The notes: generated by a model not told the origin, from the sequence alone. 64,000 nucleotides of DNA from Entomortierella parvispora E1425 (GCA_020891255.1 BQFW01000009.1:62001-126000); one strand, 5' to 3'; shown: positions 523 through 26,002, numbered from the stretch's first letter. Numbers and translations are program-made.

Positions 523-1529
523 ATAAACTTGTGCTAGATTACTAGCTGCATTACAGAAAGGAGCGGACAATATACAAGACAGGGGCAATAAATGGAGTGT
601 CCTACCCTGCTGCTCTGAGGAGTTGGGGGGCCGTCAATTGGCGAGAGAGATTGTCTGCCACGCGGCTCGCAGGTCAGAGTGAGGGGCTCACTCTTGGAAT
701 GACCTTAACCAAGCCTGGAGGATCTCCCTTGCATGCTAAAGCCCGCCTTATACAATGTCGTGATCATGGCTCAGTTCCAAAGCGAGGTTCAAGTGAGGAC
801 AGACGAGGATGAGGTGGTCCAAGCACTGCGAAGCTCACCTTTCAACCGTTAATGCTTCATTCGATCCTCTCTCCACATTGCCCAAATGAATGAAAGACCA
901 TCCCAACAATAATGCACAGTCGCATGACACGGTGGACCACACATACCCTGAAGTCGAGGCAATCCCACGCGTCGCTCTCTCTCTTTCTTTGCTTCCATTC
1001 ACTCGTTCAATCACTCACCCCGAGCATAATGCACCCACCCAATGCATTCATCCCATCACAATGACAACCGCTGTGTCTCCGGGTGAACCTCCTATGGACG
1101 TTACTGTAGTCACTCTGCGAGGTATGTGGGATGTGCAGTAAGGAAACACATCCTCCTTTTCTACAGCAAAAAGGAGTGGGAATGAAAATGGCGACGTTTG
1201 ATGTTTGTTGTGCTGTACCCTTGGCCCCTTTCCCTCCATTTTTCCACAAACAAAAGAAAGAAAGGAGTGAGAAAATGAATACCCTGTTGCCCCAAACAAG
1301 CCGACAAAACGACGAACATGTTCATTGACCTTGGGCAGCTGCACTGCAGTGCCCTCGGGGAAGGATACTACCCCTCGAAAGGACCCCTTTGATCGAAACA
1401 CAAAAGGCTTTGCTTCCCACTGACCATTTTACCTTCTGCTTCTTCTTTGTCCTTTGTCGAAACACCCTACCCCCACTGCAGCATTTCAAGTTCGACAGGC
1501 AACCCAGCCGTTGCTAGGATCTATCAACC

Positions 1530-4500
1530 ATGCAGATCCTTCGAACCCGCCTTGCCTCCCTCCTATTGGTTGCATGCGCTAGCTCAATTGCAATTCTTCA
1601 GACAGCATCAGGACTTACAGAAGTATCGGAGACAAACGCCCACGCTGAGGCTCAGAGTCTTGACCACCGTGATCATGGCGCTGGACATCTCAAGCACCAT
1701 CAACATCTTGGCCACCTCGGCCATCCCAACCGTCCTCACCACTTCCACGATAAAGAAGGGAAAGGCAAGCAGGATGGTCCTCGCCACAGATCAAAGGACA
1801 AGCACCATCACCTCCATCACAACAGTCGTCACAAGAAGCCAAATGTGTCCACCTGTAAGTTAGCTACAGCAATATTTTTTTTGTTGGTCATCCTTGAGAG
1901 AAAGACAATGGCGGAAGAAAAGAGAATGAGAGAATTGAGAGCAGGCCGCGATCTTATAAGAGATCCATGTAGACTCTGAAAGACAGCCTTTCTCTTGCCA
2001 GATTCTAACCTATCCTATCCTCTTACTACCATTGACGAGAACTATAGACAAGATCTCCTTGGTTTGTAGCGACTTTGTGATTGACACTATCCAGTGTCCA
2101 GTGCGGCCGACCGACCCAGGATCTCCACCTTCTTGCCATGCCATGAACAACAATGTCGACATTGTATACATCTTCATGCAAGAACCCTGTTCCAAGGACT
2201 TGCCAACAGTGTGCCCCAAGCCTATCGCCATGGCTGTGAACGACGAATCCGAGATTGCAGACTTGCCCGACAACACTGTCCTGTCTGCCAAAACCGAAGG
2301 CAACCATGCCCTATACAAGCGCAATCGCGGTGGTCACCCTCTCAAACACCGAGACCATCACGGGAAGAACCAACACCACCACCACGGTCGCGGCAAGCAC
2401 GGGCACAAAAACCACCGCCACAAGCATTGTCACGACAAGGACAAGAACAAGCATCCATACAAGGATCTGTGTGTGGCGGTCGGAGATTTCTGCGGAAACG
2501 CTCTCTACGGCTGCGACTTTGTTGCTACGACACTGTACCGCTGCGATGCTATTGGTCAGCGTCCCAAGCCTATAGTCGAAGACTCAGCGTCTTGCGGAGG
2601 AACCAAGGCTTGTCTCTGCCCAGCATCTCCTACAGGCATCATTTGTGGCCAGGATCTCCCTAAGGAATGCAAAGTCTCCAAGAATTCTGTGTATGACTGC
2701 TCTGGTGGCGCTGGAACGATTCCCAAGTTGGTGGGTGATTGTGAATCTGGAAAAGTTTGCAGAAAGGACGATCCCTCAAAAGACGCGACCTGCGTGCCCA
2801 TCGGCTGCGAATGCTCAGGCGACAAGGTGGTCTGTTCGGATAGCTTCCCTGATGCATGTGGCTACAGCAAAAACACGATCTACAGGTGCACCAACGGTGG
2901 CAAACCCGAGAAGGTGATAGAGTGTCAAGACCCTGAAGTCTGTACCTCTCTTTCTGATGGAGCGATCTGCAAGCCAGAAGAGCATGACAAGTGTGTCTGT
3001 CCGACAGGGGGTTCCAACAAGATTTGTGGATCGCAGCTCCCAGAGGATTGCAAGGCCCAACTGAACGGCATCTACGACTGCTCAGCAGGAGGTGGCACCA
3101 AGCCATCCGAGATTGGCCTTTGTCCTCCAGGAATCGAATGTGTGGATGGAGCCGGATCGAACGATGCCATTTGCGGTTCCTACAACTGCGACTGCACTGG
3201 CGACTTGGTGGTATGCTCCAATGCCTTCCCCGAGAAGTGTAAACTGCAACCCAACACCATCTACAAGTGCACTGCCAGCGGCAGGCCAGCAAAGGTCACC
3301 TCTTGCAAAGATGGGGAAACGTGCATCACAGTCGCAGATGGATCCATCTGCCGACCCGATGACTGCAAGTGTACCGACGACGGTGTTGTCTGTGGCGACG
3401 CGTTCCCAGCCAAGTGTAACCTTAAGACTAGCTCATTATACGATTGCAAGAAGGGCGGGGATCCAGTTTTCAAGACCGAGTGCAGTAATCCTGGACGCTG
3501 CACCTCTACCCAAGCCTCCATGTCTGCAGAAGCTGTATTCAAGGCCAATGCCAACGACAGATGTATCGACGGCTGCACGTGTGGTGACAGGGGCAAGGTA
3601 AGATAAAATCCATATGCCTCTTTGGAAAATTGACCGCTCGAGTATCTAACTATTTACTTCCTTTTGGTGTGGTTTCGACTGTCCTAGGCATGCGCGTCAA
3701 CGTTCCCTCCAGAGTGCAACTACCCTCTGGATTCGATCGTGGATTGTTCTGGATCTGGCGCCACCCCTACCAATTTCCAGAAATGCGTGACTGGCGCTTG
3801 TATTGTCAGTAATGGCGACGATAGATGCAGCAACAACAAGTGCACCTGCCCCGGCGACACCCCGATCTGTGGATTCGATCTTCCTAAGGAATGTAACGCA
3901 AAGCCCCATATCATCTACTATTGCCCTGATGGCAAGGGCACGGAACCTGTGGAACTCACCGAGTGCAAGCCTGGCACTATCTGCAACAAGAAGGATGCCC
4001 CCATTGGAGCTGCCTGTGGTGGAGAGAATTGCGACTGTCCCGGCGACAAGGAAGTCTGCTCCAACGCTTTCCCCGACTTTTGTGGATATGAGAAGAACGC
4101 CATCTACGAGTGCACCACATCCGGCAAGCCTATGAAGAGAAAGAACTGCGAAGACAATCAGGCCTGTGTCACCCTATCTGATGGAGCAGTTTGCACCCAA
4201 ACCGACTGCAAATGTCCCACGGATGGCGATATCTGCGGCATCTTCTTCCCTCAAGCTTGCAGGATCCCCACTGATGACATCTACTCTTGTGTCAAAGGCG
4301 AGGATCCCGTTCTCACAAGGGTCTGCGGTGTTGGCGGATGTATTGCAACCGTAGGCTCTTCGATGGCGACAGCAACGGCAGTATTCCAAGGAGCATCAGC
4401 ATCAGACAAGTGTGTTGAGGACCCATGCAAGTGCCAAGAGAAAGGGGATGTATGCGGGTCGACCTTCCCTAGCGTGTGCAATTTTTTTTCAATGGACACC

Positions 4501-7500
4501 CTATACGGGTGCACTGGCAACGGTGCAACTCCTACGGAGAAGGTCAAGTGCGCCAAGGACAAGTGCATCGTCACTGCTGGCGATGATGTATGCGATCGAA
4601 ACCCTTGCGCCTGCGAGGATGACAGCGCGATCTGTGGTTCTGCCTTCTCACCCAAGTGCGATTTGGATCCCAAAACGTTGTACAAGTGCGATGGAGCTGG
4701 CTCTATTCCGACAATGGAAGAGGTCTGCGACATACAATGTATCGTGAAGGAAGGTCCAGATGAATGTTCGCCGAACCCTTGTATCTGCAAGGAGGTAAAG
4801 AAGGCCATTTGCGGCAACACCTTCAATAAGGTGTGCGGTCTTGACGAGGATACTCTGTATGAGTGCTCTTCTGTGGGGGCTGAACCAAAGCCAATCAGGA
4901 AGTGCGATGCAGGATGCGAGGAAGGAGCCGAAAACTCAGACGATTTTTGCAGGGATCTGTGTGTTTGTCCTGAAAGTAAAAAGGACAAGATTTGCGGATC
5001 AGAGTTGCCGGACTTTTGCAAGGGCTACAAAAACGCTATCTACCATTGCCCCAACGGCGAAGGATCCAAGCCGTTGCTCATCGGACACTGCGAACCGGGT
5101 CTAGAGTGTGTCCGGAAGGAAGAGTTGGATGATGCCACCTGTGGATCTAGGAATTGCGAATGCAATGGAAATATGGAAGTTTGCTCCGACTCTTTCCCTA
5201 AAAAGTGTGGATTGGATTCCAACACCATCTACAAGTGCACCGCCAGTGGTAGGCCAGCCAAGGTCGCCTCGTGCAATGAAGGGGAAATCTGTATCGCGCT
5301 CGCAGATGGATCTATCTGTCGACCTGACGATTGCAAGTGTACTAGTGACGGTGTTGTCTGTGGTGACGCATTCCCGGCCAAGTGTAATCTCCGGATGGAC
5401 GCCCTCTTTGACTGCAAAAGGGGAGAGGATCCGGTATTTAAATCCGAGTGCGACAAGCCGGGCCGCTGTTTCGCTTCCAAGGCTTCCATCTCTGCAGCCT
5501 CGGTTTTCAAGGCCACTTCTGACGACAAGTGTGTTGACGGCTGTACCTGTGGTGACAAGGGCATCGTAAGTTTATGGATATCAATCCCCGTGAAAGGCTG
5601 ATCAATGGAGAAAAATACATTTAATAACTTTTTGTGGTCTCATATGGTCCTAGGCTTGCACTTCGACGTTCCCTCCAGAGTGCGGCCTTCAGCAGAACTC
5701 GATTGTGGAGTGCTCTGGAACTGGCGCCAAGCCAACAAACCCACAGGTGTGCAAGGACGGTCACTGCGTCGTAAGCAACGGCAATGACAGATGCAGCAAC
5801 GACAAGTGCACCTGCCCTGGAGACAATCCAGTCTGCGGATCCGATCTTCCAAAGGAATGCAACGCCAAGGTCAACATTATCTACCATTGCCCTGATGGCA
5901 AGGGCACCGAGCCTCAAGAGCTCTTCGAGTGCATGCCTGGAACCATCTGTCACAAGAAAGGAGATCCTGCCAAGGCTATCTGTGGCCCGGAGAACTGCGA
6001 GTGCTTCGGCGACCATGAAGTCTGCTCCTCTGTATTCCCCGACTCTTGTGGGCTCGACGAGAATTCGATCTACAAGTGCACCCTATCTGGCAAGCCGGAG
6101 AAGAAGGCTGATTGTTTGGATACTGAATCCTGTGTTACCTTGTCTGGCGGCGTTGCCTGTGCCAAGGACGATTGCAAGTGCCACACTGACGGCGACGTGT
6201 GCGGTGCAGTTTTCCCATACCACTGTAGGATCCCTTCTGGCGACATCTATTCGTGCGTCAAGGGCGAAACACCTGACCTCAAGGAGGATTGCGGTGCCAG
6301 CGAATGCATTGCAACCAAAGGTTCTTTAATGGCGATAACGGCTGCGGTCTTCTTAGAGGCCGCAGCGAAGGATAGGTGTGCTGAGGATCCATGCCAATGC
6401 CAGGAGAAGAACCTCGCTTGTGGCCTTACCTTCCCCGAGGAATGCAAGCTCTCCAAGGATACTCTCTACGAATGCACCGCCGCTGGTGAAACTCCGCGAG
6501 AGATTGAGAAGTGCGACGTCGACAAGTGCATCATATCCGGTGGAGATAACAGGTGCGATGGAGGAATCTGTGCCTGCAAGGACGAAGACTTGACCTGCGG
6601 CTCTGCCTTCCCGCCCGAGTGCAAATTAGATCCCAGGACATTGTACAATTGCGCCATAGCTGGTTCGAAGCCAACGCCCAACAAGACCTGCAAGACTAAA
6701 TGTGTAGAGAAGGACGGGCCTGATGAGTGCGATCCAGAGGACGATCCCTCTATATTGGAATGCCGGTGCAAGGACGACTATGATATCTGTGGTGTTGTGT
6801 TCCCCGAATATTGCAGAAGGGACCCCAATACGCTTTACAAGTGCTCTGGCAATGGCACCAGGCCATCAGACCCAACGCCTTGCACTGGTGGCCAATGTTT
6901 GGTCCTGGAAGGAAACGACAAGTGCAGTGGCTTGTGTCTCTGCCGAGAAGCAAAGGAAGCCGTTTGCGGCAACAAATTCGATATAACATGCGGACTCGAT
7001 GATGGAACGCTGTATGAGTGTCCTTCCATTGGAGCTACACCAAAGCCGATCGAGAAGTGCAAGGCAGGATGCGAGGGAGCAGGAATAGACAAACCCGACG
7101 TTTGCAAGGATCCATGTGCCTGTCCTACTGGCAGAATGAGAATTTGCGGATATGAGCTTCCTGCAGAATGCATGGCTGACAAGAATGCCATCTATCTCTG
7201 CCCAGGTGGGGACAGATCCAAGCCATCGCTGATTGGCCATTGCATGCCCGGTGTCGAGTGTGTCCGTGAACGTTCGTCAGACAATGCGAACTGTGGCACT
7301 CACAACTGTGATTGCGTTGGTAGCAATGAAGTGTGCTCCGATTTCTTCCCTGGAACGTGTGGGCTGGAACCCAATACCGTCTATAGGTGCACAGCGAATG
7401 GCAAGCCCGAGAAGGTCGCTCCTTGTGGTGCAGGAGAGGTATGCATTACAGTATCGGACGGATCCATCTGCCGGATAAACAATTGCAAGTGTCTAGGCGA

Positions 7501-10500
7501 TGGCCCTACCTGCGGTGAGGCATTCCCTCCGGACTGCAACATCCCCACAGATGCTCTTTATGATTGCAAAAAGGGAGAGGATCCGGTACTCAAGTCCACA
7601 TGCCCTCAGCCGGGTCGTTGCTCAGCCTCCAAGAGCTCCGTTTCTGCCGCTGCGATTTTCAAGGCTACCGCGGACGACAAATGTGTTGATGGTTGCAAAT
7701 GCGAGGCCAAAGAAACGGTATTTTTTTTTTTTTTGATTTGTGATTTGATCATTATGAAGGCCACTCATTCGATTGACTAAAACCATATCTCCAACTCGGA
7801 TAGGTCTGCGCGTGGACGTTCCCATCACAATGCAATCTTCCCGCAAACTCGCTTGTTGAGTGCTCTGGGCCTGGTGCCAAACCCACCAATCCACAGATTT
7901 GTGAGAACAATGCCTGTCTTGTCAACATTGGACATGACAGATGCAGTGATGACAAATGCACTTGCGTACGTGCTGGCCTTGTTTGTGGATCTGAGCTTCC
8001 ATCAGAGTGCCATGCAAACGACAACACGGTCTATAATTGCGCTGGCCAAGGCTCCAGGCCTGAAGAGCTTTCCGAGTGCCCACCTGGAACTGAGTGCATT
8101 CCGAGAGATGGAACTCCTGGTGCCGTGTGTGGCTCAAAGAAGTGCGATTGCTTCGGCCACGCCACAGTGTGCTCTGACTCTTTCCCTGAATCCTGTGGCC
8201 TCGACAAAAACTCTGTCTACCAGTGCACCTCCTCCGGCAGAGCAGAGAAGGTACAAGACTGTGAGAAGGGCCAGTGTGTCCAATTGGCAGATGGTGCTAT
8301 TTGTACAATCGACAAGTGCAAGTGTCCACATGATGGCGATGTCTGTGGAGCCATCTTCCCGATGGATTGCAAAATCCCCGCTGGCAACATTTACACCTGT
8401 GTCAAAGGTGAAGATCCGATCCTCAAGGAGGAGTGTCCTGTAGGATGCATTAGCACTATGAAGAGCGCACGCAGCCTGATATCCGCCAAGTCGGTGTTTG
8501 AAGCCACGGAAGGAGCAGCAGACAAGTGCACCCAGGACCCATGCAAGTGTCCTAGCAAGGGCGTTTTCTGCGGATCAAACTTTCCAGAAAGCTGCGGTTA
8601 TGACAAGGACACCCTGTATGACTGCAAAGGCCTGGGAGAAACTCCGATTGAGAAGGAGACGTGCGCAAAGGACAAATGTATCAATCTTGTCGGCGAGAAT
8701 CGCTGCGATAAATGTCTCTGTCCTACAGGCAGCACAGGCAGCGTCTGCGGATCAAAGCTTCCCAATGAATGCAATGCCGACAAGAACACCATCTACGACT
8801 GCTCTGATGGCCCCAATACAACACCACTGCCATTGGGCCCATGCAAGCCCGGTGTTGAGTGTGTCGAGCATGCTGGTTCCAAGGACGCCGACTGCGGCTC
8901 ACGCACTTGCGATTGCTCTGGAGATATGGAAGTCTGTTCTAACTCCTTCCCCGATCACTGCGGAATGGATCCCAACACCATCTACAAGTGTACCCCAAGC
9001 GGTCGACCCATCAAGGTCGCCTCCTGCAAAGGAGGGGAGACTTGTATCACAGTCGCAGACGGATCTCTCTGCCGACCCGACAATTGCAAGTGTACTAGCG
9101 ACGGTGTTGTCTGTGGCGATGCGTTCCCAGACAAGTGCCACCTCAAGACTAACTCATTGTACGATTGCAAGAAGGGAGAGGATCCGGTATTCAAGTCTGA
9201 ATGCGACAAGCCTGGACGCTGCTTCGCTTCGAAGGCCTCGATCTCTGCTGCCTCGGTTTTCAAGGCCACCTTTAACGACAAGTGTGTTGACGGTTGCTCC
9301 TGTGGCGATAAGGGAACGGTATGTGTAGATATACATTGCACCAAGCTGAAATTTTGCAGATCAACTAACTCTCGGATAACCCCATTTTGATCCACTGGTA
9401 TGGATTAGGCTTGCACATCCACGTTCCCACCAGAGTGTAATTTGCCCGCGAACTCGATCGTGGAGTGCTTTGGACCTGGAGTGCTACCTAAGAACCCAAA
9501 GAAATGCGAATACGACACCTGTATTGTGAACAACGGCAACGACAAGTGCAGCAACATCAAATGCACCTGTTCTGACAATACCCCTGTCTGCGGCTTCAAC
9601 CTTCCAGAGGAGTGCAATGCCAAGAAAAACACAATCTACCATTGTCCAGGAGGCATTGGCACCGAGCCTGAGGAGCTCACTGAGTGCAAGCCAGGCACGA
9701 TCTGCAACCAGAAAGCGCCTCCCATCGGCGCCGCTTGCGGTGGAGTCGACTGCGAGTGTATCGGCGACCATGCAGTGTGTTCCGAAGTGTTCCCCGACTA
9801 TTGCAAATACGACAAAAACACCATCTATCGATGCACTCGGACTGGACAGCCTCAGAAAATAGAGACGTGTGCAGACGATGAGGCCTGTGTCACCCTGTCT
9901 GATGGACCAGTTTGCACTCAAACCGACTGCAAGTGCCCCACTGACGGCGATGTCTGCGGCAGCGTCTTCCCTCAAGATTGCAGGATCCCCACTGGTGATA
10001 TCTATTCCTGCGTCAAGGGCGAGAAACCTGTTCTCAAGGAGGATTGTGGTGTTGGAGGATGCATCTCAAGCAAGGGATCCTCGTTAGCAGCCGCTGCAGC
10101 AGTCTTCCAAGGAACTGCAGCTACAGACAAGTGTGTCGATGATCCATGCAAGTGTCAGGAGAGGAAGCTCATTTGTGGGGTGACCTTCCCAGAGCAGTGC
10201 CAGTTCCCAGCTGATACTCTGTATGAGTGCACTGGCAACGGAGCAACTCCGACCATCAAGGAGACATGCGAAGAGGGATCTACATGCGTCGTCACAGCTG
10301 GAGACAACAAGTGCAAGAACGACAAGTGCTTCTGTCCGACAGGAGGCACCAACAATATTTGTGGATCGCAGCTGCCTGTGGAATGTAAGGCCCACCTGAA
10401 CGGAATCTACGACTGCTCAGCAGGAGGTGGCACTAGGCCCTCTGAAATTGGCCTTTGTCCTCCAGGAGTCGAATGCGTGGATGGAGCCGGATCTAATGAT

Positions 10501-13500
10501 GCCATTTGCGGCTCCCATAACTGCGACTGCACTGGCGACTTGGTGGTATGCTCCAATGCCTTCCCCGACAAGTGTAAACTGCAACCCAACACCATCTACA
10601 AGTGCACTGCCAGCGGCAGGCCAGCAAAGGTCACCTCCTGCAAAGACGGGGAAACGTGTATCACAGTCGCAGATGGATCTATCTGCCGACCTGACGACTG
10701 CAAGTGTACCGACGACGGTGTTGTCTGCGGCGACGCGTTCCCAGCCAGGTGTGACCTCAAGACTAGTTCGTTGTACGATTGCAAGAAGGGCGAAAATCCA
10801 ATCTTCAAGACTGAGTGTAGTGATCCTGGTCGTTGCACCTCTGCCCAGGCCTTCATATCCGCGCAAGCTGTGTTCAAGGCCAACGCCAACGACAGATGTA
10901 TCGACGGATGCACGTGTGGTGACAGGGGCAAGGTAAGATAAAATCTATACGCCTCTTTGGAAAGCTATTGACCGCTCGAGTATCTAACTCTTTACTTTTT
11001 TTGTTTTGGTGTGGTTTTTGACTGTCCTAGGAATGCACGTCAACGTTCCCTCCAGAGTGCAGTTACCCTGTGGATTCGATCGTGGATTGTTCTGGATCTG
11101 GCGCCACCCCTACCAATTTCCAGAAATGCGTGACCGGCGCTTGTATTGTCAGTAATGGCGAAGATAGATGCAGCAACAACAAGTGCACCTGCCCCGGCGA
11201 CACCCCGATCTGTGGATTCGATCTTCCTGAGGAATGTAACGCAAAGCCCCATATCATCTACTATTGCCCTGATGGCAAGGGCACGGAACCTGTGGAACTC
11301 ACCGAGTGCAAGCCTGGCACTATCTGCAACAAGAAGGATGCCCCCATTGGAGCTGCCTGTGGTGGAGAGAATTGCGACTGTCCCGGTGACAGGGAAGTTT
11401 GCTCCAATGCTTTCCCTGACTTTTGTGGATATGAGAAGAACGCCATCTACGAGTGCACCACAACCGGCAAGCCTTTGAAGAGAAAGAACTGCGAGGACAA
11501 TCAGGCCTGTGTCACCCTGTCTGATGGAGCAGTTTGCACCCAAACCGACTGCAAATGTCCCACGGATGGCGATGTCTGCGGCTTGGTCTTCCCTCAAGCT
11601 TGCAGAATCCCCACGAGTGAGATCTATTCTTGTGTCAAGGGCGAGGATCCTGTTCTCACAGAGGATTGCGGTGTTGGCGGATGTATTGCAACCGTGGGCT
11701 CTTCGATGGCGACAGCGACTGCAGTATTCCAAGGAGTAACAGCGTCGGACAAGTGTGTTGAGGACCCATGCAAGTGCCAAGAGAAGGGGGATGTATGCGG
11801 CTCGACCTTCCCTGGCGTGTGCAATTTCTCAAGGGACACCCTATACGAGTGCATTGGCTACGGTGCAACTCCTACAGAGAAGGTCAAGTGTGCCAAGGAC
11901 AAGTGCATCGTCACTGCTGGCGATGATAAATGCGACAACTGCATCTGTCCGACAGGAGGCACTAGCAAGATCTGTGGATCGCAGCTGCATGTGGAATGTA
12001 AAGCACATCTGAACGGCCTCTATGACTGCTCAGCAGGAGCTGGAACCACACCTTCTCAGATCGGCCTTTGTCCTCCAGGAATCGAATGTGTGGATGGAGC
12101 CGGATCGAATGATGCCATTTGCGGATCCTACAACTGCGACTGCTTTGGAGACTTAGTGGTATGCTCCAATGCCTTCCCGGACAAGTGCGGACTGCAACCC
12201 AACACTATCTACAAGTGCACTGCCAGTGGCAGACCAGCAAAGGTCACCTCCTGCAAAGATGGGGAAACATGTATCACAGTCGCAGATGGATCCATCTGCC
12301 GACCTGACGATTGCAAGTGTACCGACGACGGTGTTGTCTGTGGCGATGCGTTCCCAGCCAAGTGTAACCTGAAGACTAGCGCATTGTATGATTGCAAGAA
12401 GGGAGAGGACCCAGTATTCAAGACCGAGTGTAGTGATCCTGGTCGTTGCACCTCTACCGAAGCCTCCATATCCGCAGAGGCTGTATTCAAGGCTACCGCC
12501 AATGACAGATGTATCGACGGCTGCACGTGTGGTGACAGGGGCAAGGTAAGATAAGATCTACATGCGTCTTTGAATAGTCATTATTCTCCATTCAAATTTT
12601 ACTGATAATTTTATTTTGTGGCAATAGGCATGTACATCGACCTTCCCCCCAGAGTGCAATTACCCTCTGAACTCGATTGTGGATTGCTCCGCCTCTGGCG
12701 CCACCCCTACCAATTTCCAGAAATGCGTGACCGGCGCTTGTATTGTCAGTAATGGCGAAGATAGATGCAGCAACAACAAGTGCACCTGCCCCGGCGACAT
12801 CCCGATCTGTGGATACGATCTTCCTGAGGAATGCAACGCCAATCGCCACAGCGTCTACTATTGCCCTGATGGCAAGGGAACAGAACCAAAGGAGCTCACC
12901 GAATGCAAACCAGGCACTATTTGTAATCGGAAGGAGCCTCCCGTTGGAGCTGAATGTGGTGGACTGACCTGCGAGTGTCCTGGTGACATGGAAGTCTGCT
13001 CAAATTCTTTCCCCGACACTTGTGGGTACGACAAGAACGCCATCTACAAGTGCACCACATCCGGCAGACCCACAAAGACAAAGGACTGCGAGAACAATCA
13101 GGCCTGTGTCACCCTGTCTGATGGAGCAGTTTGCACCCAAACCGACTGCAAATGCCCCACGGATGGCAATGTCTGCGGCTTGGTCTTCCCTCAAGCTTGC
13201 AGGATCCCCACTGGTGACATCTACTCTTGTGTCAAAGGCGAGGATCCTGTTCTCACAGAGGATTGCGGTATTGGCGGATGTATTGCAACCGTAGGACCTT
13301 CGATGGAGGCAGCCGCTGCGGCATTCCAAGGAGAAGCAGCATCAGACAAGTGCGTCGAGGACCCATGCAAATGCCAAGAGAAGGGCGATGCGTGCGGTTT
13401 TACCTTCCCTGAAGAGTGCCACCTCCCTAGAGACACCCTTTACAGATGCAGTGGCAAAGATGCGACTCCGGAGAAGAAGATGGAATGCGACCCAGGCGGA

Positions 13501-16124
13501 TGTATACCCACTGCTGGTGATGATCTTTGCCGCTATTGTATCTGCCCGGATGATACTCCCACCTGTGGATCCGTCTTTGGGCCCGAGTGCAACTTGGACA
13601 GCTCAACACTCTACTCCTGCTCTCACGCTGGCGCTCTTCCTCTAACTCCCACTGAATGTGCATGGGGTTGTGATGTCAGGGATGGACCAGACAGGTGCAA
13701 CGCCGACTGCCTGTGCAAGAATGGAAACGATGTCTGTGGATCCACATTCCCCTCCAAGTGCGGCTACAAGCCTGATACCCTCTACAAGTGTTCAGGCGCT
13801 CTTGCTGACCCTTCAGCTCCAGTCGACTGCGCTTGGGGCTGTGACGCAAAATCTGGACCAGATTCGTGCAACGTCGACTGTCTGTGTGTGGACAAGGACG
13901 ATGTGTGTGGATCAGATTTTCCACCCAGATGCGGCTACAAGAAGGATACACTATACAAGTGCACCGATGCCCTTGCCGACCCCTCATCTCCAACCGTCTG
14001 TAAATGGGGCTGCGATATCAAACCTGGACCAGACAAGTGCAACGCTGATTGCCAGTGTAAGGATGGAGACGATGTCTGCGGATCCGTATTCCCCCCCAAG
14101 TGCGGCTTGGAGAAGAATGCCCTGTACAAGTGCGCAGGCCCTCTTGCCGATCCGACCTCTCCAGTTGTCTGCAGAAAGGGTTGCGACGTCCGACCTGGAC
14201 CAGACAAGTGCAACACTGACTGTCTGTGCAAGAGCGACGAAGATGTCTGTGGATCAGAGTTCCCTGACAAGTGTGGCTTTGATAAGAACTCTCTTTACAA
14301 GTGCTCAGGAGCTTTCGCCGATCCGACCTCTCCAATTGTCTGTAGAAAGGGTTGCGACGTCAAACCTGGACCAGACAAGTGCAACATTGACTGTCTGTGC
14401 AAGAACGGCGAAGATGTCTGTGGATCAGAGTTCCCTGAAAAGTGTGGCTTTGACAAGAATGCCCTGTACAAGTGCGCAGGCCCTCTTGCCGATCCGACCT
14501 CTCCGGTTGTCTGTAGAAAGGGTTGCGACGTCAAACCTGGACCAGACAAATGCAACATTGACTGTCTGTGCAAGAACGGCGACGATGTCTGTGGATCCGA
14601 GTTCCCTGACAAGTGTGGCTTTGACAAGAATGCCCTGTACAAGTGCGCAGGCCCTCTTGCCGATCCGACCTCTCCAGTTGTCTGTAGAAAGGGTTGCGAC
14701 GTCAAACCTGGACCAGACAAATGCAACACTGACTGTCTGTGCAAGAACGACGAAGATGTCTGCGGATCAGAGTTCCCTGACAAGTGTGGCTTTGATAAGA
14801 ATTATCTCTACAAGTGCTCAGGCCCTCTTGCTGATCCGACCTCTCCAGTTGTCTGCAGAAAGGGTTGCGACGTCCGACCTGGACCAGACAAGTGCAACAC
14901 TGACTGTCTGTGCAAGAACGGCGAAGATGTCTGTGGATCAGAGTTCCCTGACAAGTGTGGTTTTGATAAGAATTCTCTCTACAAGTGCTCAGGAGCTCTC
15001 GCCGATCCGACCTCTCCAGTTGTCTGCAGAAAGGGTTGTGATGTTAAGCCTGGACCAGATCAATGCAACACCGACTGTCTGTGCAAGAATGGTGAAGATG
15101 TTTGCGGATCAGAGTTCCCCCCCAAATGCGGCCTTCAGAAGGATTCCCTGTACAAGTGCTCAGGCGCTCTTGCCGATCCTTCCTCGCCAGTGGCTTGTCC
15201 AAAGGGCTGTGATGTTAAACCAGGACCAGACCAGTGCAACACCGACTGCCTGTGCAAGGATGGCAACAACGTCTGTGGAACAGAATTCCCCGACAAATGC
15301 GGCTTCAAGAAGGACTCGCTCTACAGCTGTTCAGGTGCTCTTGCTGAACCGTCCAGACCACAAACCTGCACCTTTGGACCCTGCCTGGTCATCAAGGACA
15401 AGAATGATATTTGTACGCCTGATCCATGCCTTTGCACTGAGAAGAAGAGGTTTTGCAGCAATTCCTTGCCGGCGACATGTGGTTTCTCCAACAATACCGT
15501 CTTGGACTGTTCGGGCAGTGGAGTCAGACCTCAGATTGTGAAGGAATGTGAAACTGCAGACACTTGTGTTGAAGATCCTGTCCAAGGTGCAATCTGCAAA
15601 TGCTTGCCAGCGGAGAGTGGAAATATCATCAATCCATACTCTGGTAAATGTATCGCGGTACCTAAGCTTGCGGTGGTAAGTGACTATTCAAAACAAGTGA
15701 GAATACAACTCTTCTAGCGTGGCCATTTGACTGACATTGACGGTTCTCTTTCCCTTTATTTCACTCTACGCGCTTTTAGGGAGAGGGCGTTATATTCATG
15801 AACTGCAGCAGCAAGGTGTCTTACAACGACTGGCGCTTGGTAGGTGGCAGGATCAAGTCTCAAAACAACCAATTCTGCCTAGGATACAAACTGGGCACCA
15901 GACCGTACGAAAACAACCGGATGATTGTGCTGAGGTGCGACTCCAACGAAAAAACTACGATCGGGTGGACAATCGTGAACAGAGAGTCTATCATGAGCGG
16001 GGAGGGCCGCCTTTGCGTCGACATTGAAGGTCCTATCTACGTGGACGGAAACCCCATTATTGCTTATCCTTGCCACGGAGGAGAAAATCAGCTGTGGACC
16101 TTGCCATTGGGATGGGGATGCTAG
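1530..16124 (+). CDS. Giant secreted cysteine-rich repeat protein (~4,587 aa) with a C-terminal ricin-B-type lectin domain
   Basis: join(1530-1854,2048-3597,3688-5565,5654-7717,7804-9318,9409-10932,11031-12545,12628-15675,15780-16124) = 13,764 nt. All 8 introns are GT..AG and each junction preserves the frame. Hydrophobic N-terminus MQILRTRLASLLLVACASSIAILQTASG. About 68 modules of pattern CxC-x6-CG-x2-FP-x2-C…LYxC…P…C…C…C. The C-terminus has ricin-B hallmarks (NPYSGKCI, NQFCL, LCVDI…GNPIIAYPCHGGENQLW). Confidence 0.9.
2990..4585 (+). repeat. Intragenic duplicated block (end of exon 2, intron 2, start of exon 3); second copy at about 10325-11925
   Basis: Intron 2 (3598-3687) and intron 6 (10933-11030) are nearly identical (gtaagataaaatc…gcctctttggaaa…ttgaccgctcgagtatctaact…ttttggtgtggttt…gactgtcctag), and the flanking exon sequence is near-identical. 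Confidence 0.9.
13708..15426 (+). repeat. Tandem array of 10 coding repeats with a 171-bp (57-aa) period
   Basis: Units start at 13708 + 171n (confirmed at 14050 and 15247). Consensus CLCKNGEDVCGSEFPDKCGFDKNALYKCAGPLADPTSPVVCRKGCDVKPGPDKCNTD. The central units are nearly identical in DNA. Confidence 0.97.
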
Positions 16125-16242
16125 TAATAAAGCGGCGTGTTATTTATTATCAAGTCAGAAAACTATCTTTGAAGGGGCGGAGCATATCATCTGCCTTTCA
16201 GGATATAGTTGACCTCTTCGTGCGTCTGGCAGCGAACTCAGA

Positions 16243-18424
16243 CTAGAATGTTCTCTGGGTTGCAGTTGTGTTCTTTTCCGAGTTCTCCCAAAGGGTTCTC
16301 GCCCGTATGGAACCAGTGTCCATAGCAGAAGCAGCAGCGACGAAATAGTAGGAAAGAAGTATGTGGCAAAGACGTTTATTGTTATTTTGAAGTATTGATA
16401 TGGATGGTACTGAAGTGCTGATATTGTCGGTTAAAGTACTTGCTTGTATGGAACCAGTGCCCGCATAGCAGAAGCAGCAGCGACGAAATAGTAGGAAAGA
16501 AGTATGTGGCAAAGACAGCTTTCCCCTGTCTCCCGCCCATTGCATGTTTTTATACCAGAGTTGCGGTGGCTTGTAGGCAAATCCACGACACGAAGGCGGC
16601 CATGTCCTCGTAGAGGGGATGGCGGGAAATGTGGCCCTTTTACATACAGTCCCAGAGTAAAAAAACATTGGCCGCCGGACACAGTAAAAAAACCTTCACC
16701 CAGGTGTTACAAAAGTCCAAGGGTCGACACTACTTACAGTTTTTCATAGGGTTCCGCCAAGGAGCCGTTGTTTTCAAGAACTTGGTCCCTGAAATACATC
16801 AAATCAGGACCAATATCCACAGGACCAATATCCACATTGCTGTATGTCCACGTGCTTTCGACATTCGAATCATGTCTTCCATCTCCCTCCAGAAAATTCC
16901 AGGCATATAGTCCGGAAGTTGAATCATAGAGGTCCTGGTCAGACAAAAAATCCGGATCATTTGGATCGCATGATGGGAGGTCCAAGTTAAAAAGGGGCTG
17001 TTGGTTCAATGGTTGATCTGTCAGCGTTGCAACATTGCCAATGTCGCTATGATTTTCATTGTTAGGTGAAAGGTATCTCGGGAGGTTCACTATAAAAGTG
17101 ATGTTCAGAAACACTGAGCATCAGAACAAGTCTTCAATTTTACAACACTATTGCCTGAAAATAAGTCCACGATCACTTACGATCATCCATCGTCAAGCTG
17201 TGTCCAAATGAAACTAATAAGAGGAGAAAAGATAAGTGAGTGTATCTGCCTACAAAACAAGATGTCGTTTAACTTTTACGCTACTTACTTCCTGTCGATT
17301 GACTGCGATTCTTGTCAGTGGAAGTCCTAGATTCAAGCTGTCCATACAGATCTTCACTACGATCAACGAACAGAGAGGCAGATGAAGGAGGGCCAGTCGA
17401 GCAGGCACCTTCTTTGCAAGACTGTACAGGTGGTGAAGAAAGTGTATCCCGATTGGGGTGAGAGACAAGTGCATTAGGCGTCTTTGACGAGTCAGCAACC
17501 TGGTCGAACCATGCAAGCCATGCAGCAGGCAGTACGGTATCAGTGAGGAAAATATCGTTGACTTCACCATCCTCACCCCCGATATCCTCGTCTTGGCCAT
17601 CATCTTCCTTGTCTTGAGAAAGGCCTAGCTCATTAACAGTGATGACTGGAGGAGTTTGCGGGGACAGAGGGGCTATTAAAAATGCAAATGTTATCAGCGT
17701 GACTAGTAGAATTGAACAAACAGAAGAGCGTGTCCTAGCGGACGTCCAATTGTTCTCACCTCTTTTCGTGGAGTTACCGTTGTCATCAAATGGGTCTCGG
17801 GGGTGCTTCAGAGGGCCTAGACAGTATCAGTGAAAGTCAAAGAGTGAATACTATTAGCTAGAACAAAGACGAAAATCTTATAGGAACGCATCGCTTACTT
17901 ATACTGGGAAAGTTGTAGCCGGGCAGTGATGGGCCTGGAGCGGGATAGGGAGAGCCTGCCGTCGAGAAGTATTCAAGGAGGGTTGACTGTATGAGTGATA
18001 GGCAAAACGAGTGTTATGAAAAGGGTCCTTTCAAATTACCGGATGAAGTGTATTTATTTGACTGGTCGTCAGAGTCTTCTTTGTATGTCGAGTACTCAGC
18101 TTGAAGTACGTGCAAACCAGCCTCGGCTGAAGAGACAGCAGCCTTCCATGCTGTGCTTTTAAGGCTGAGCTTGAACCGCAGTGATTCCCAATATTGTTTA
18201 GCCTCGTTGGCTTTAAAAGTCTGGTACTCTCTCATTAGATGTTTTCTCCGAGCGGCGACGATTGCTGTCGACTTGATAAGCTGCAAATACTGTTCTTCTG
18301 CAGATTCCGCGTCGGTGTATTTGAATCTTCTGGCAAATGATGGCATATTCACATGCTCTCTGCGGTCTTGCGTAAAAGACAACGCCCACTGGAGTTGGCT
18401 CTTGAATGAACGGTCTGAATCCAT
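16243..18424 (-). CDS. Hypothetical multi-exon protein (~553 aa); 3' end uncertain, possibly truncated
   Basis: complement(join(16243-16636?,16738-17089,17181-17213,17289-17672,17760-17816,17899-17955,18040-18424)). The first six exons join in frame through canonical GT-AG introns. The last exon relies on a weaker AAG acceptor and spans the direct repeat. Confidence 0.6.
16305..16516. repeat. Direct repeat pair of about 70 bp (16305-16373 and 16446-16516)
   Basis: gtatggaaccagtg…catagcagaagcagcagcgacgaaatagtaggaaagaagtatgtggcaaagac occurs twice, 141 bp apart. Confidence 0.95.

Positions 18425-19699: not shown

Positions 19700-26002
<6,303 letters not shown>

Follow-up and report, generated by a model that had tools for sequence, protein, structure and literature searches.

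Do the cysteine-rich reading frames between positions 1530 and 16124 of a 64,000-nt stretch of the Entomortierella parvispora E1425 genome (GCA_020891255.1, BQFW01000009.1:62001-126000; hereafter the window) belong to one gene and, if so, what would its product do? We found that they very probably form a single spliced gene for a secreted protein of 68 tandem eight-Cys modules, set between a His-rich head and a C-terminal ricin-B-type lectin domain. The modules are homologous to a repeat found on bacterial wall hydrolases, and the protein may be a multivalent binder of cell-wall glycans.

Gene model and protein layout

The + strand from 1,400 to 16,300 was translated from stop to stop, and plausible donors and acceptors were then enumerated. 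Long Cys-rich frames (10-13% Cys) switched frame at short gaps that carried fungal-type signals, namely GTAAGT, GTAAGA or GTATGT donors, CTAAC-like branch sites and YAG acceptors. Joining nine + strand exons between 1530 and 16124 gave an open coding sequence of 13,764 nt (4,587 aa), which reproduces exactly the figure proposed for this locus in a first-pass annotation of the window. All eight introns are GT..AG and 82-193 nt long. Reading through them is impossible, because each contains in-frame stops or shifts the frame (at least five of the eight lengths are not multiples of three). The gene and its product are laid out as follows.

1530-16124, + strand: whole gene, nine exons and eight introns; mature protein ~481 kDa, isoelectric point (pI) 4.9
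1530-1854, + strand: exon 1
1855-2047, + strand: intron 1, 193 nt, phase 1; GTAAGT ... CTAAC ... TAG
2048-3597, + strand: exon 2
3598-3687, + strand: intron 2, 90 nt, phase 0; 8 residues into a module
3688-5565, + strand: exon 3
5566-5653, + strand: intron 3, 88 nt, phase 0; same module position as intron 2
5654-7717, + strand: exon 4
7718-7803, + strand: intron 4, 86 nt, phase 0; same module position as intron 2
7804-9318, + strand: exon 5
9319-9408, + strand: intron 5, 90 nt, phase 0; same module position as intron 2
9409-10932, + strand: exon 6
10933-11030, + strand: intron 6, 98 nt, phase 0; homologous to intron 2, with indels that are not multiples of three
11031-12545, + strand: exon 7
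12546-12627, + strand: intron 7, 82 nt, phase 0; same module position as intron 2
12628-15675, + strand: exon 8
15676-15779, + strand: intron 8, 104 nt, phase 0; within the ricin-B domain
15780-16124, + strand: exon 9
1530-1610, + strand: signal peptide, ~aa 1-27; the sole hydrophobic segment, with the N-terminus conserved in the Mortierella alpina orthologue (P0008)
1662-1832, + strand: His-rich tract 1, aa 45-101; the orthologue is His-rich here too
2048-2232, + strand: six-Cys head segment, aa 109-170; conserved in orthologues, no Pfam match
2329-2460, + strand: His-rich tract 2, aa 203-246; tract missing from the M. alpina orthologue
2467-15609, + strand: 68 tandem eight-Cys modules, aa 249-4451; first module degenerate, array interrupted by introns 2-7
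15610-16121, + strand: ricin-B-type beta-trefoil lectin, aa 4452-4587; first lobe in exon 8, remainder in exon 9

Introns 2-7 are all in phase 0 and interrupt their modules after exactly eight residues, and splicing rebuilt the Cys spacing 1-6-7-9-12-4-8 in six out of six junction modules. A paralogue on contig C5 and the M. alpina orthologue also have an intron at this position (...G-K/Q / V/A-C-...), and the position of intron 8 recurs in Linnemannia zychae and M. alpina. Collinearity with P0008 extends over the N-terminus (signal peptide, His tract, Cys head and degenerate first module), and the C-terminus aligns across the intron 8 junction with both P0008 and the L. zychae protein. The homologous introns 2 and 6 differ by frame-breaking indels. 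In the coding sequence, the ratio of nonsynonymous to synonymous substitution (dN/dS) was 0.12-0.30 in eight cassette-pair comparisons, and the modules are under purifying selection. The restoration of modules at every junction, the intron positions shared with paralogues and the orthologue, and the low dN/dS together make one spliced gene across 1530-16124 very probable. Internal exons carry no hydrophobic leader, and the disulfide-rich pieces could therefore not be secreted separately.

The opposing view would be that the locus is not one gene but a set of neighbouring genes, a repeat array in decay or a shorter gene inflated by misassembly. The single-gene model was drawn from genomic sequence, orthologues in other species hold only ~10 modules, and repeats are difficult to assemble. 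This view is nevertheless highly improbable given internal exons without start codon context, signal peptide or hydrophobic segment, a perfect module at every junction, the dN/dS values, zero stops across 13.7 kb, cassettes only 70-94% identical in DNA (and therefore distinct copies rather than collapsed or duplicated reads) and a long-read assembly at ~409x (PMC8759367). The published E1425 genome comprises 19 chromosomal contigs and the mitochondrion, was built from Nanopore and Illumina data (409x) and was annotated with AUGUSTUS; RNA sequencing data are deposited as DRA013164 (PMC8759367). Alternative-frame ORFs (open reading frames) also occur inside the gene, including one of 627 aa in frame 1 (window 13658-15541, + strand, 2.4% Cys) and others of 100-250 aa on both strands that had no homology support. 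These are by-products of repetitive, stop-poor sequence.

The deduced protein contains 556 Cys (12.1% of 4,587 aa). A regular expression recovered 67 complete modules with exactly eight Cys each, and a hidden Markov model (HMM) built from 42 modules placed 68 at aa 249-4451, so that the first-pass estimates of ~12% Cys and ~68 eight-Cys modules were both borne out. The spacing is C-x-C-x6..8-C-x7-C-x9-C-x11..13-C-x3..5-C-x8..26-C, with Cys typically at positions 1, 3, 10, 18, 28, ~40, ~46 and ~55 of a module of 57-75 residues, and each module is probably locked by four disulfides. Non-Cys positions G11, F14-P15, Y26 and P34 are conserved across species and in bacterial homologues (described below). 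The upstream array is organised as cassettes of ~8 modules (~505 aa) that share 70-94% DNA identity, and the 3' end consists of 11 near-uniform 57-aa modules.

Beyond the array, hydrophobic windows were found only at aa 3-30 of the whole protein, and no transmembrane segment, glycosylphosphatidylinositol (GPI) tail or internal signal peptide was detected, in keeping with a secreted product that lacks an anchor, as first annotated. The His-rich head was likewise recovered, with 36 of 66 His falling within the first 260 residues; its composition suggests that it may bind metal. The protein is acidic (pI 4.9; mean net charge per module -2.7) and has only seven N-glycosylation sequons. Pfam searches on the exons revealed no enzyme or toxin domain. 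The C-terminal ricin-B domain was confirmed, the last exon matching Pfam Ricin_B_lectin (PF00652) at E 1e-12 and 48.7 bits against a gathering cut-off of 29 bits; the spliced product of orthologue P0008 covers model positions 2-126 of 126. By sequence reading, the W-motifs are NDW, IGW and QLW, the last lobe retains C-V-D ... Y-P-C ... N-Q-L-W, and the canonical Asp/aromatic/Asn-Gln-x-Trp sugar-site set is kept only by the third lobe.

Several other architectures were tried and rejected. A polyprotein processed by Kex2 is at odds with five KR and one RR in 4,587 aa, none periodic. A GPI-anchored adhesin of the Als/Flo type fails in that no hydrophobic window lies outside aa 3-30 and the C-terminus is a ricin domain. 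The analogy to von Willebrand factor and gel-forming mucins drawn in the first-pass annotation found no domain support, since Pfam gave no VWD, C8 or TIL match and TILa appeared only at E 0.45 in 2 of 42 modules.

Within each cassette, the last loop of two modules is lengthened by an Ala/Ser-rich insertion of ~12-18 residues (e.g. ...A-T-A-V-F-Q-G...), at a position conserved across cassettes and in homologues.

Window 4207-4425: module with Ala/Ser-rich insertion
Window 6173-6391: module with Ala/Ser-rich insertion
Window 8317-8541: module with Ala/Ser-rich insertion
Window 9928-10146: module with Ala/Ser-rich insertion
Window 11550-11768: module with Ala/Ser-rich insertion
Window 13147-13365: module with Ala/Ser-rich insertion
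Preceding introns 2, 3, 4, 5, 6 and 7: 70-aa modules with Ala/Ser-rich insertion

Distribution of the module in fungi and bacteria

To what family do these modules belong? No match was found in Pfam, NCBIfam or PDB sequences (PDB by profile and by exon, E<=10), which agrees with the initial impression that the module has no named family. Feature searches of the ESM Atlas with the module gave no usable match, and a description of this family was not found in the literature. When the module profile was read against 1.84 billion protein representatives (E<=1e-3), only 199 carriers were retrieved, the largest being a protein of 3,286 aa with 50 modules. Identity to the window protein was at most 78% for every retrieved protein, and the fungal C-x-C type was present in ~153 of 170. 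A search with exon 8 returned 32 proteins, the named ones all being 'hypothetical proteins' of Mortierellaceae (Linnemannia, Podila, Mortierella, Lunasporangiospora, Gryganskiella and Entomortierella), and 30 out of 30 named eukaryotic carriers that were looked up came from this family of fungi. On sequence grounds, the module is a family of its own that, within eukaryotes, is restricted to Mortierellaceae. Public genomes already contain the gene and its relatives, as nothing more than hypothetical proteins; the description of the gene as hidden thus applies to a prokaryote-style ORF track and not to the many Mortierellaceae genomes in which the family is annotated. One exon 8 match, P0002 (Podila epigama, 1,714 aa), is the sole carrier among these matches of a precomputed PF27397.1 annotation, which probably refers to its first 259 aa rather than to the module.

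The weak tail of the module profile search was bacterial, comprising Myxococcales and Patescibacteria that the fungal HMM matched at E 1e-21 to 1e-12. These bacteria carry a tandem repeat of 50 aa with six Cys (consensus C-P-x2-G-x-Y-C-G ... L-Y-x-C ... P ... C-x-N-G-C ... P-G-T-P-D-x-C), the core of which aligns with the fungal module from its second Cys on. Comparison of the fungal and bacterial repeat profiles by hhalign gave a probability of 97.6% (E 4.3e-12, 43 columns), and the bacterial repeat query retrieved Podila protein P0042 at E 5e-40. Judged by these profiles, the fungal module is homologous to the six-Cys repeat of Patescibacteria and Myxococcota, and the notion of a module without relatives has to be given up. 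The bacterial repeat sits on M23 hydrolases: in a search with the repeat region of a bacterial member, Peptidase_M23 was present in 24 of 33 bacterial carriers, others had CHAP or Peptidase_C39_2, and ricin-B was present in four. Repeats appended to wall hydrolases are usually the wall-targeting part.

In the same genome (20 contigs, 38.9 Mb searched), at least seven further loci were found on contigs C2, C4, C5 (two), C11, C13 and C14. Rather than an isolated oddity, as it had seemed at first, the gene belongs to a multigene family with members across Mortierellaceae. The orthologue in M. alpina, taken from a chromosome-level assembly, is a protein of 1,073 aa with ~10-11 modules; that of L. 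zychae is truncated by a contig end. Because the M. alpina orthologue has so few modules, the array of 68 is a lineage-specific expansion via duplication of multi-module exon cassettes. A Pfam scan detected ricin-B in only 6 of 122 non-module regions of family members, where it was the sole recurrent fungal partner. Many members lack it and the modules must therefore work without a ricin domain.

Both C5 loci (L003, C5:1139294-1155728; L004, C5:1778300-1784755) are large arrays of the same module, with very regular four-module exons of ~830 nt between which lie short GT..AG introns, again at one and the same point of the module; in L003, 39 modules fall within 10 kb and the array extends further. 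The remaining loci (L005-L009) lie at C13:2379126-2393834, C14:795744-799897, C2:2640049-2644298, C4:510730 (- strand) and C11:143881. The C2 locus probably corresponds to EMPS_01681 (P0027, 1,692 aa), whose C-terminal ~430 aa has no Pfam match and recurs in a subfamily that includes P0025, P0029, P0030, P0035, P0041, P0043 and others. In two M. alpina proteins, P0020 and P0022, modules are fused to a C-terminal fragment of HMG-CoA reductase or to PQ-loop repeats; these fusions are most likely chimeric gene predictions and not real architectures. Downstream neighbours of the window gene were not shared with the L. zychae or M. alpina loci, and its neighbouring ORFs had no Pfam match. One of them, a downstream uninterrupted ORF of 1,057 aa without a Pfam match (window 20116-23289, - strand), showed no similarity to genes flanking either orthologue.

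Predicted fold and function of the array

What might such an array bind? AlphaFold2 modelled three consecutive modules (aa 4046-4216, 145-row alignment) with a predicted local distance difference test (pLDDT) score of 95.4 and a predicted template modelling score (pTM) of 0.72, and a single module of another subtype (aa 740-798) with a pLDDT of 88.8. Both models contained short strands and a helical turn, and the prediction that the module forms a small beta-rich knot is a confident one. For the single module, Foldseek ranked archaeal Fsx1 (probability 0.93, TMq 0.67) and the antifungal miniprotein PAFC (probability 0.57, TM 0.52) highest. An exhaustive structural aligner was then run over 48,161 PDB chains, and each match spanned one whole module.

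Fsx1 domain: Z 4.6
EHEP: Z 4.3
Der p 23: Z 4.3
Blo t 12 chitin-binding domain: Z 4.0
CHIT1 CBM14: Z 3.6
PAFC (6trm): Z 3.5, 33% identity, 45 residues aligned
Avr4, two structures: Z 3.4 and 3.2
Tachycitin: Z 2.9

Chitin binders of the CBM14/peritrophin/tachycitin type accounted for ~8 of the top 12 matches, all of them weak (CBM14-type matches: Z 2.2-4.3, 45-50 residues aligned, root-mean-square deviation 2.5-3.3). Their dominance is unlikely to reflect chance, because such knots make up a tiny fraction of the 48,161 chains. Structure matches in the ESM Atlas included an 89-aa Ascomycota cluster (TM 0.71), a Peritrophin CBM_14 protein (TM 0.60), a Zoopagomycota GH18+CBM19 chitinase (TM 0.54) and Myxococcota proteins. 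We regard the predicted CBM14-like fold as a supported lead rather than a classification, because the Z values are low and membership of the CBM14 family, like that of the Bubble family, fails at the sequence level.

We propose, with confidence that is about evenly balanced, that the protein is a giant secreted multivalent binder of cell-wall glycans. The modules would act as weak carbohydrate-binding units for N-acetylglucosamine-type polymers, either the chitin/chitosan of the fungal wall or peptidoglycan, and 68 of them in series with a lectin tip would confer very high avidity. The protein could then coat or cross-link a wall polymer, or stick the hypha to partners that bear glycans, and the His-rich head would add a pH- or metal-dependent attachment. 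We speculate that the acidity would suit polycationic chitosan. The first-pass annotation pictured the array as a disulfide-rigid rod; the M23-linked bacterial homologues and the CBM14-like or PAFC-like predicted fold make it more likely a multivalent glycan-binding surface than an inert rod.

A number of observations weigh against this proposal. The structural modelling suggested at first pass for single and tandem modules delivered confident models, but Foldseek gave no PDB match at E<=0.001 for either. Values of Z 2.2-4.6 are well below the exhaustive aligner's own decisive level, its top single-module match (Z 4.6) was the unrelated archaeal Fsx1 domain, and small disulfide knots often resemble each other. 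Pfam CBM_14 (PF01607) did not match the exons or any of the 42 modules even at E<=10, and Pfam Bubble (PF09227) touched 2 of 42 modules at best E 0.0076, below cut-off. With one or two conserved aromatics (F14, Y26), each module has fewer than typical chitin-binding sites. Finally, casting the bacterial repeat as a cell-wall targeting element would be guilt by association with M23. The Bubble HMM gave no match at E<=1 over the whole genome, whose sole CBM_14 match (C14:944854-945009, - strand; 24.6 bits, just above cut-off) is unrelated to the module family.

Ricin-B lectins of fungi are known to serve in defence, and a ricin-B tip joined to PAFC-like modules could instead make a multivalent lectin or antimicrobial directed at nematodes, bacteria or competing fungi. 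PAFC had the highest identity in the structural list, with the Foldseek and Bubble matches pointing the same way, and the Ascomycota cluster was the best ESM Atlas match. We consider a defence role unlikely: the modules are acidic whereas PAFC is cationic (+3.6; PMC7865535), the Cys spacing is unlike that of PAFC (PMC7865535), the Bubble HMM was far under cut-off in the modules and found nothing in the genome, regular Kex2 sites that would release units are missing (five KR in 4,587 aa), and Pfam identified no toxin or enzymatic domain.

Slightly less probable is a disulfide-stiffened spacer without a ligand of its own, which would distance the ricin lectin from a His-rich, metal-binding anchor. 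It would fit the invariant Cys positions, the lack of a match to any Pfam ligand-binding family and the high pLDDT and pTM over three modules, which suggest a defined inter-module arrangement. A mere spacer would sit poorly, however, with the conservation of G11, F14-P15, Y26 and P34 across species and in bacterial homologues, with a bacterial repeat that occupies the site on wall hydrolases where targeting domains normally sit, and with the scarcity of ricin domains in the family (6 of 122 non-module regions).

A further scenario concerns origin as well as ligand. The ancestor of Mortierellaceae might have gained a bacterial wall-targeting repeat horizontally, added a fourth disulfide and amplified it, in which case the proteins would bind peptidoglycan or bacterial surfaces. 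The lineage is known for intimate bacterial partners (Mycoavidus endobacteria). We judge this scenario improbable; if true, the proteins would give the fungus a means to capture, agglutinate or manage bacteria.

Comparison with known systems

The favoured reading, a multivalent binder of wall glycans, would carry different meanings depending on the ligand. Binding of chitin or chitosan by the modules would make the protein the fungal equivalent of insect peritrophins and a candidate for organising the Mortierellaceae wall, which has been little studied; binding of peptidoglycan would bear on fungus-bacteria interaction. The domain is new and common to Mortierellaceae and to wall-hydrolase proteins of predatory or epibiotic bacteria (Myxococcota, Patescibacteria), such that a ligand found for either the fungal or the bacterial side would annotate both. 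With 68 domains in ~481 kDa, the protein would represent an extreme of avidity by repetition, and the gene offers a clean example of recent exon-cassette growth from the ~10 modules of related species.

Among the closest known systems is the bacterial M23-associated repeat, whose secreted carriers are mostly M23 peptidoglycan DD-metalloendopeptidases (e.g. P0154, P0160 and P0173). It shares the core C-x6-CG ... LY-x-C ... P ... C-x3-C ... C with the fungal module and, like it, forms tandem arrays that are sometimes combined with ricin-B. Bacterial units have six Cys whereas fungal units contain two further Cys, the leading one of C-x-C and the one that follows F-P. Because both are absent together from bacterial units, we infer that these two probably pair as an additional disulfide. 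Bacterial arrays comprise 5-17 units on enzymes, in contrast to 68 units and no enzyme domain in the fungal protein.

The Bubble/PAFC family (PF09227) consists of 64-aa antifungal miniproteins that resemble the modules in being secreted, fungal and ~60 residues long with eight Cys, at 33% identity. They are single-domain, cationic and found in Ascomycota and Basidiomycota, whereas the window modules are tandem, acidic and found in Mortierellaceae. The Cys positions also differ, lying at 3, 18, 28, 30, 38, 49, 54 and 64 in PAFC, which has a charge of +3.6 (PMC7865535), against 1, 3, 10, 18, 28, ~40, ~46 and ~55 in the module; an abcabdcd disulfide pattern is a further mark of the Bubble/PAFC family. 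The C-terminal 136 aa are a ricin-B domain (PF00652) above gathering score, joined here to a giant Cys-rich array and not to a toxin A chain or a glycosidase.

Peritrophins, other multi-CBM14 chitin-binding proteins and the fungal CBM14 effector Avr4 are likewise secreted, with small disulfide-rich domains (in tandem arrays) of predicted resemblance in fold. The window protein differs from them in having no Pfam CBM_14 sequence match and eight Cys at other spacings, and chitin binding here is putative. To our knowledge, insect peritrophins have ~19 domains at most, and the array described here is several times longer. The protein is of a known kind, being secreted and combining a lectin with small Cys-rich domains in tandem that probably bind carbohydrate; what is new is the domain family, its bacterial connection and its scale.

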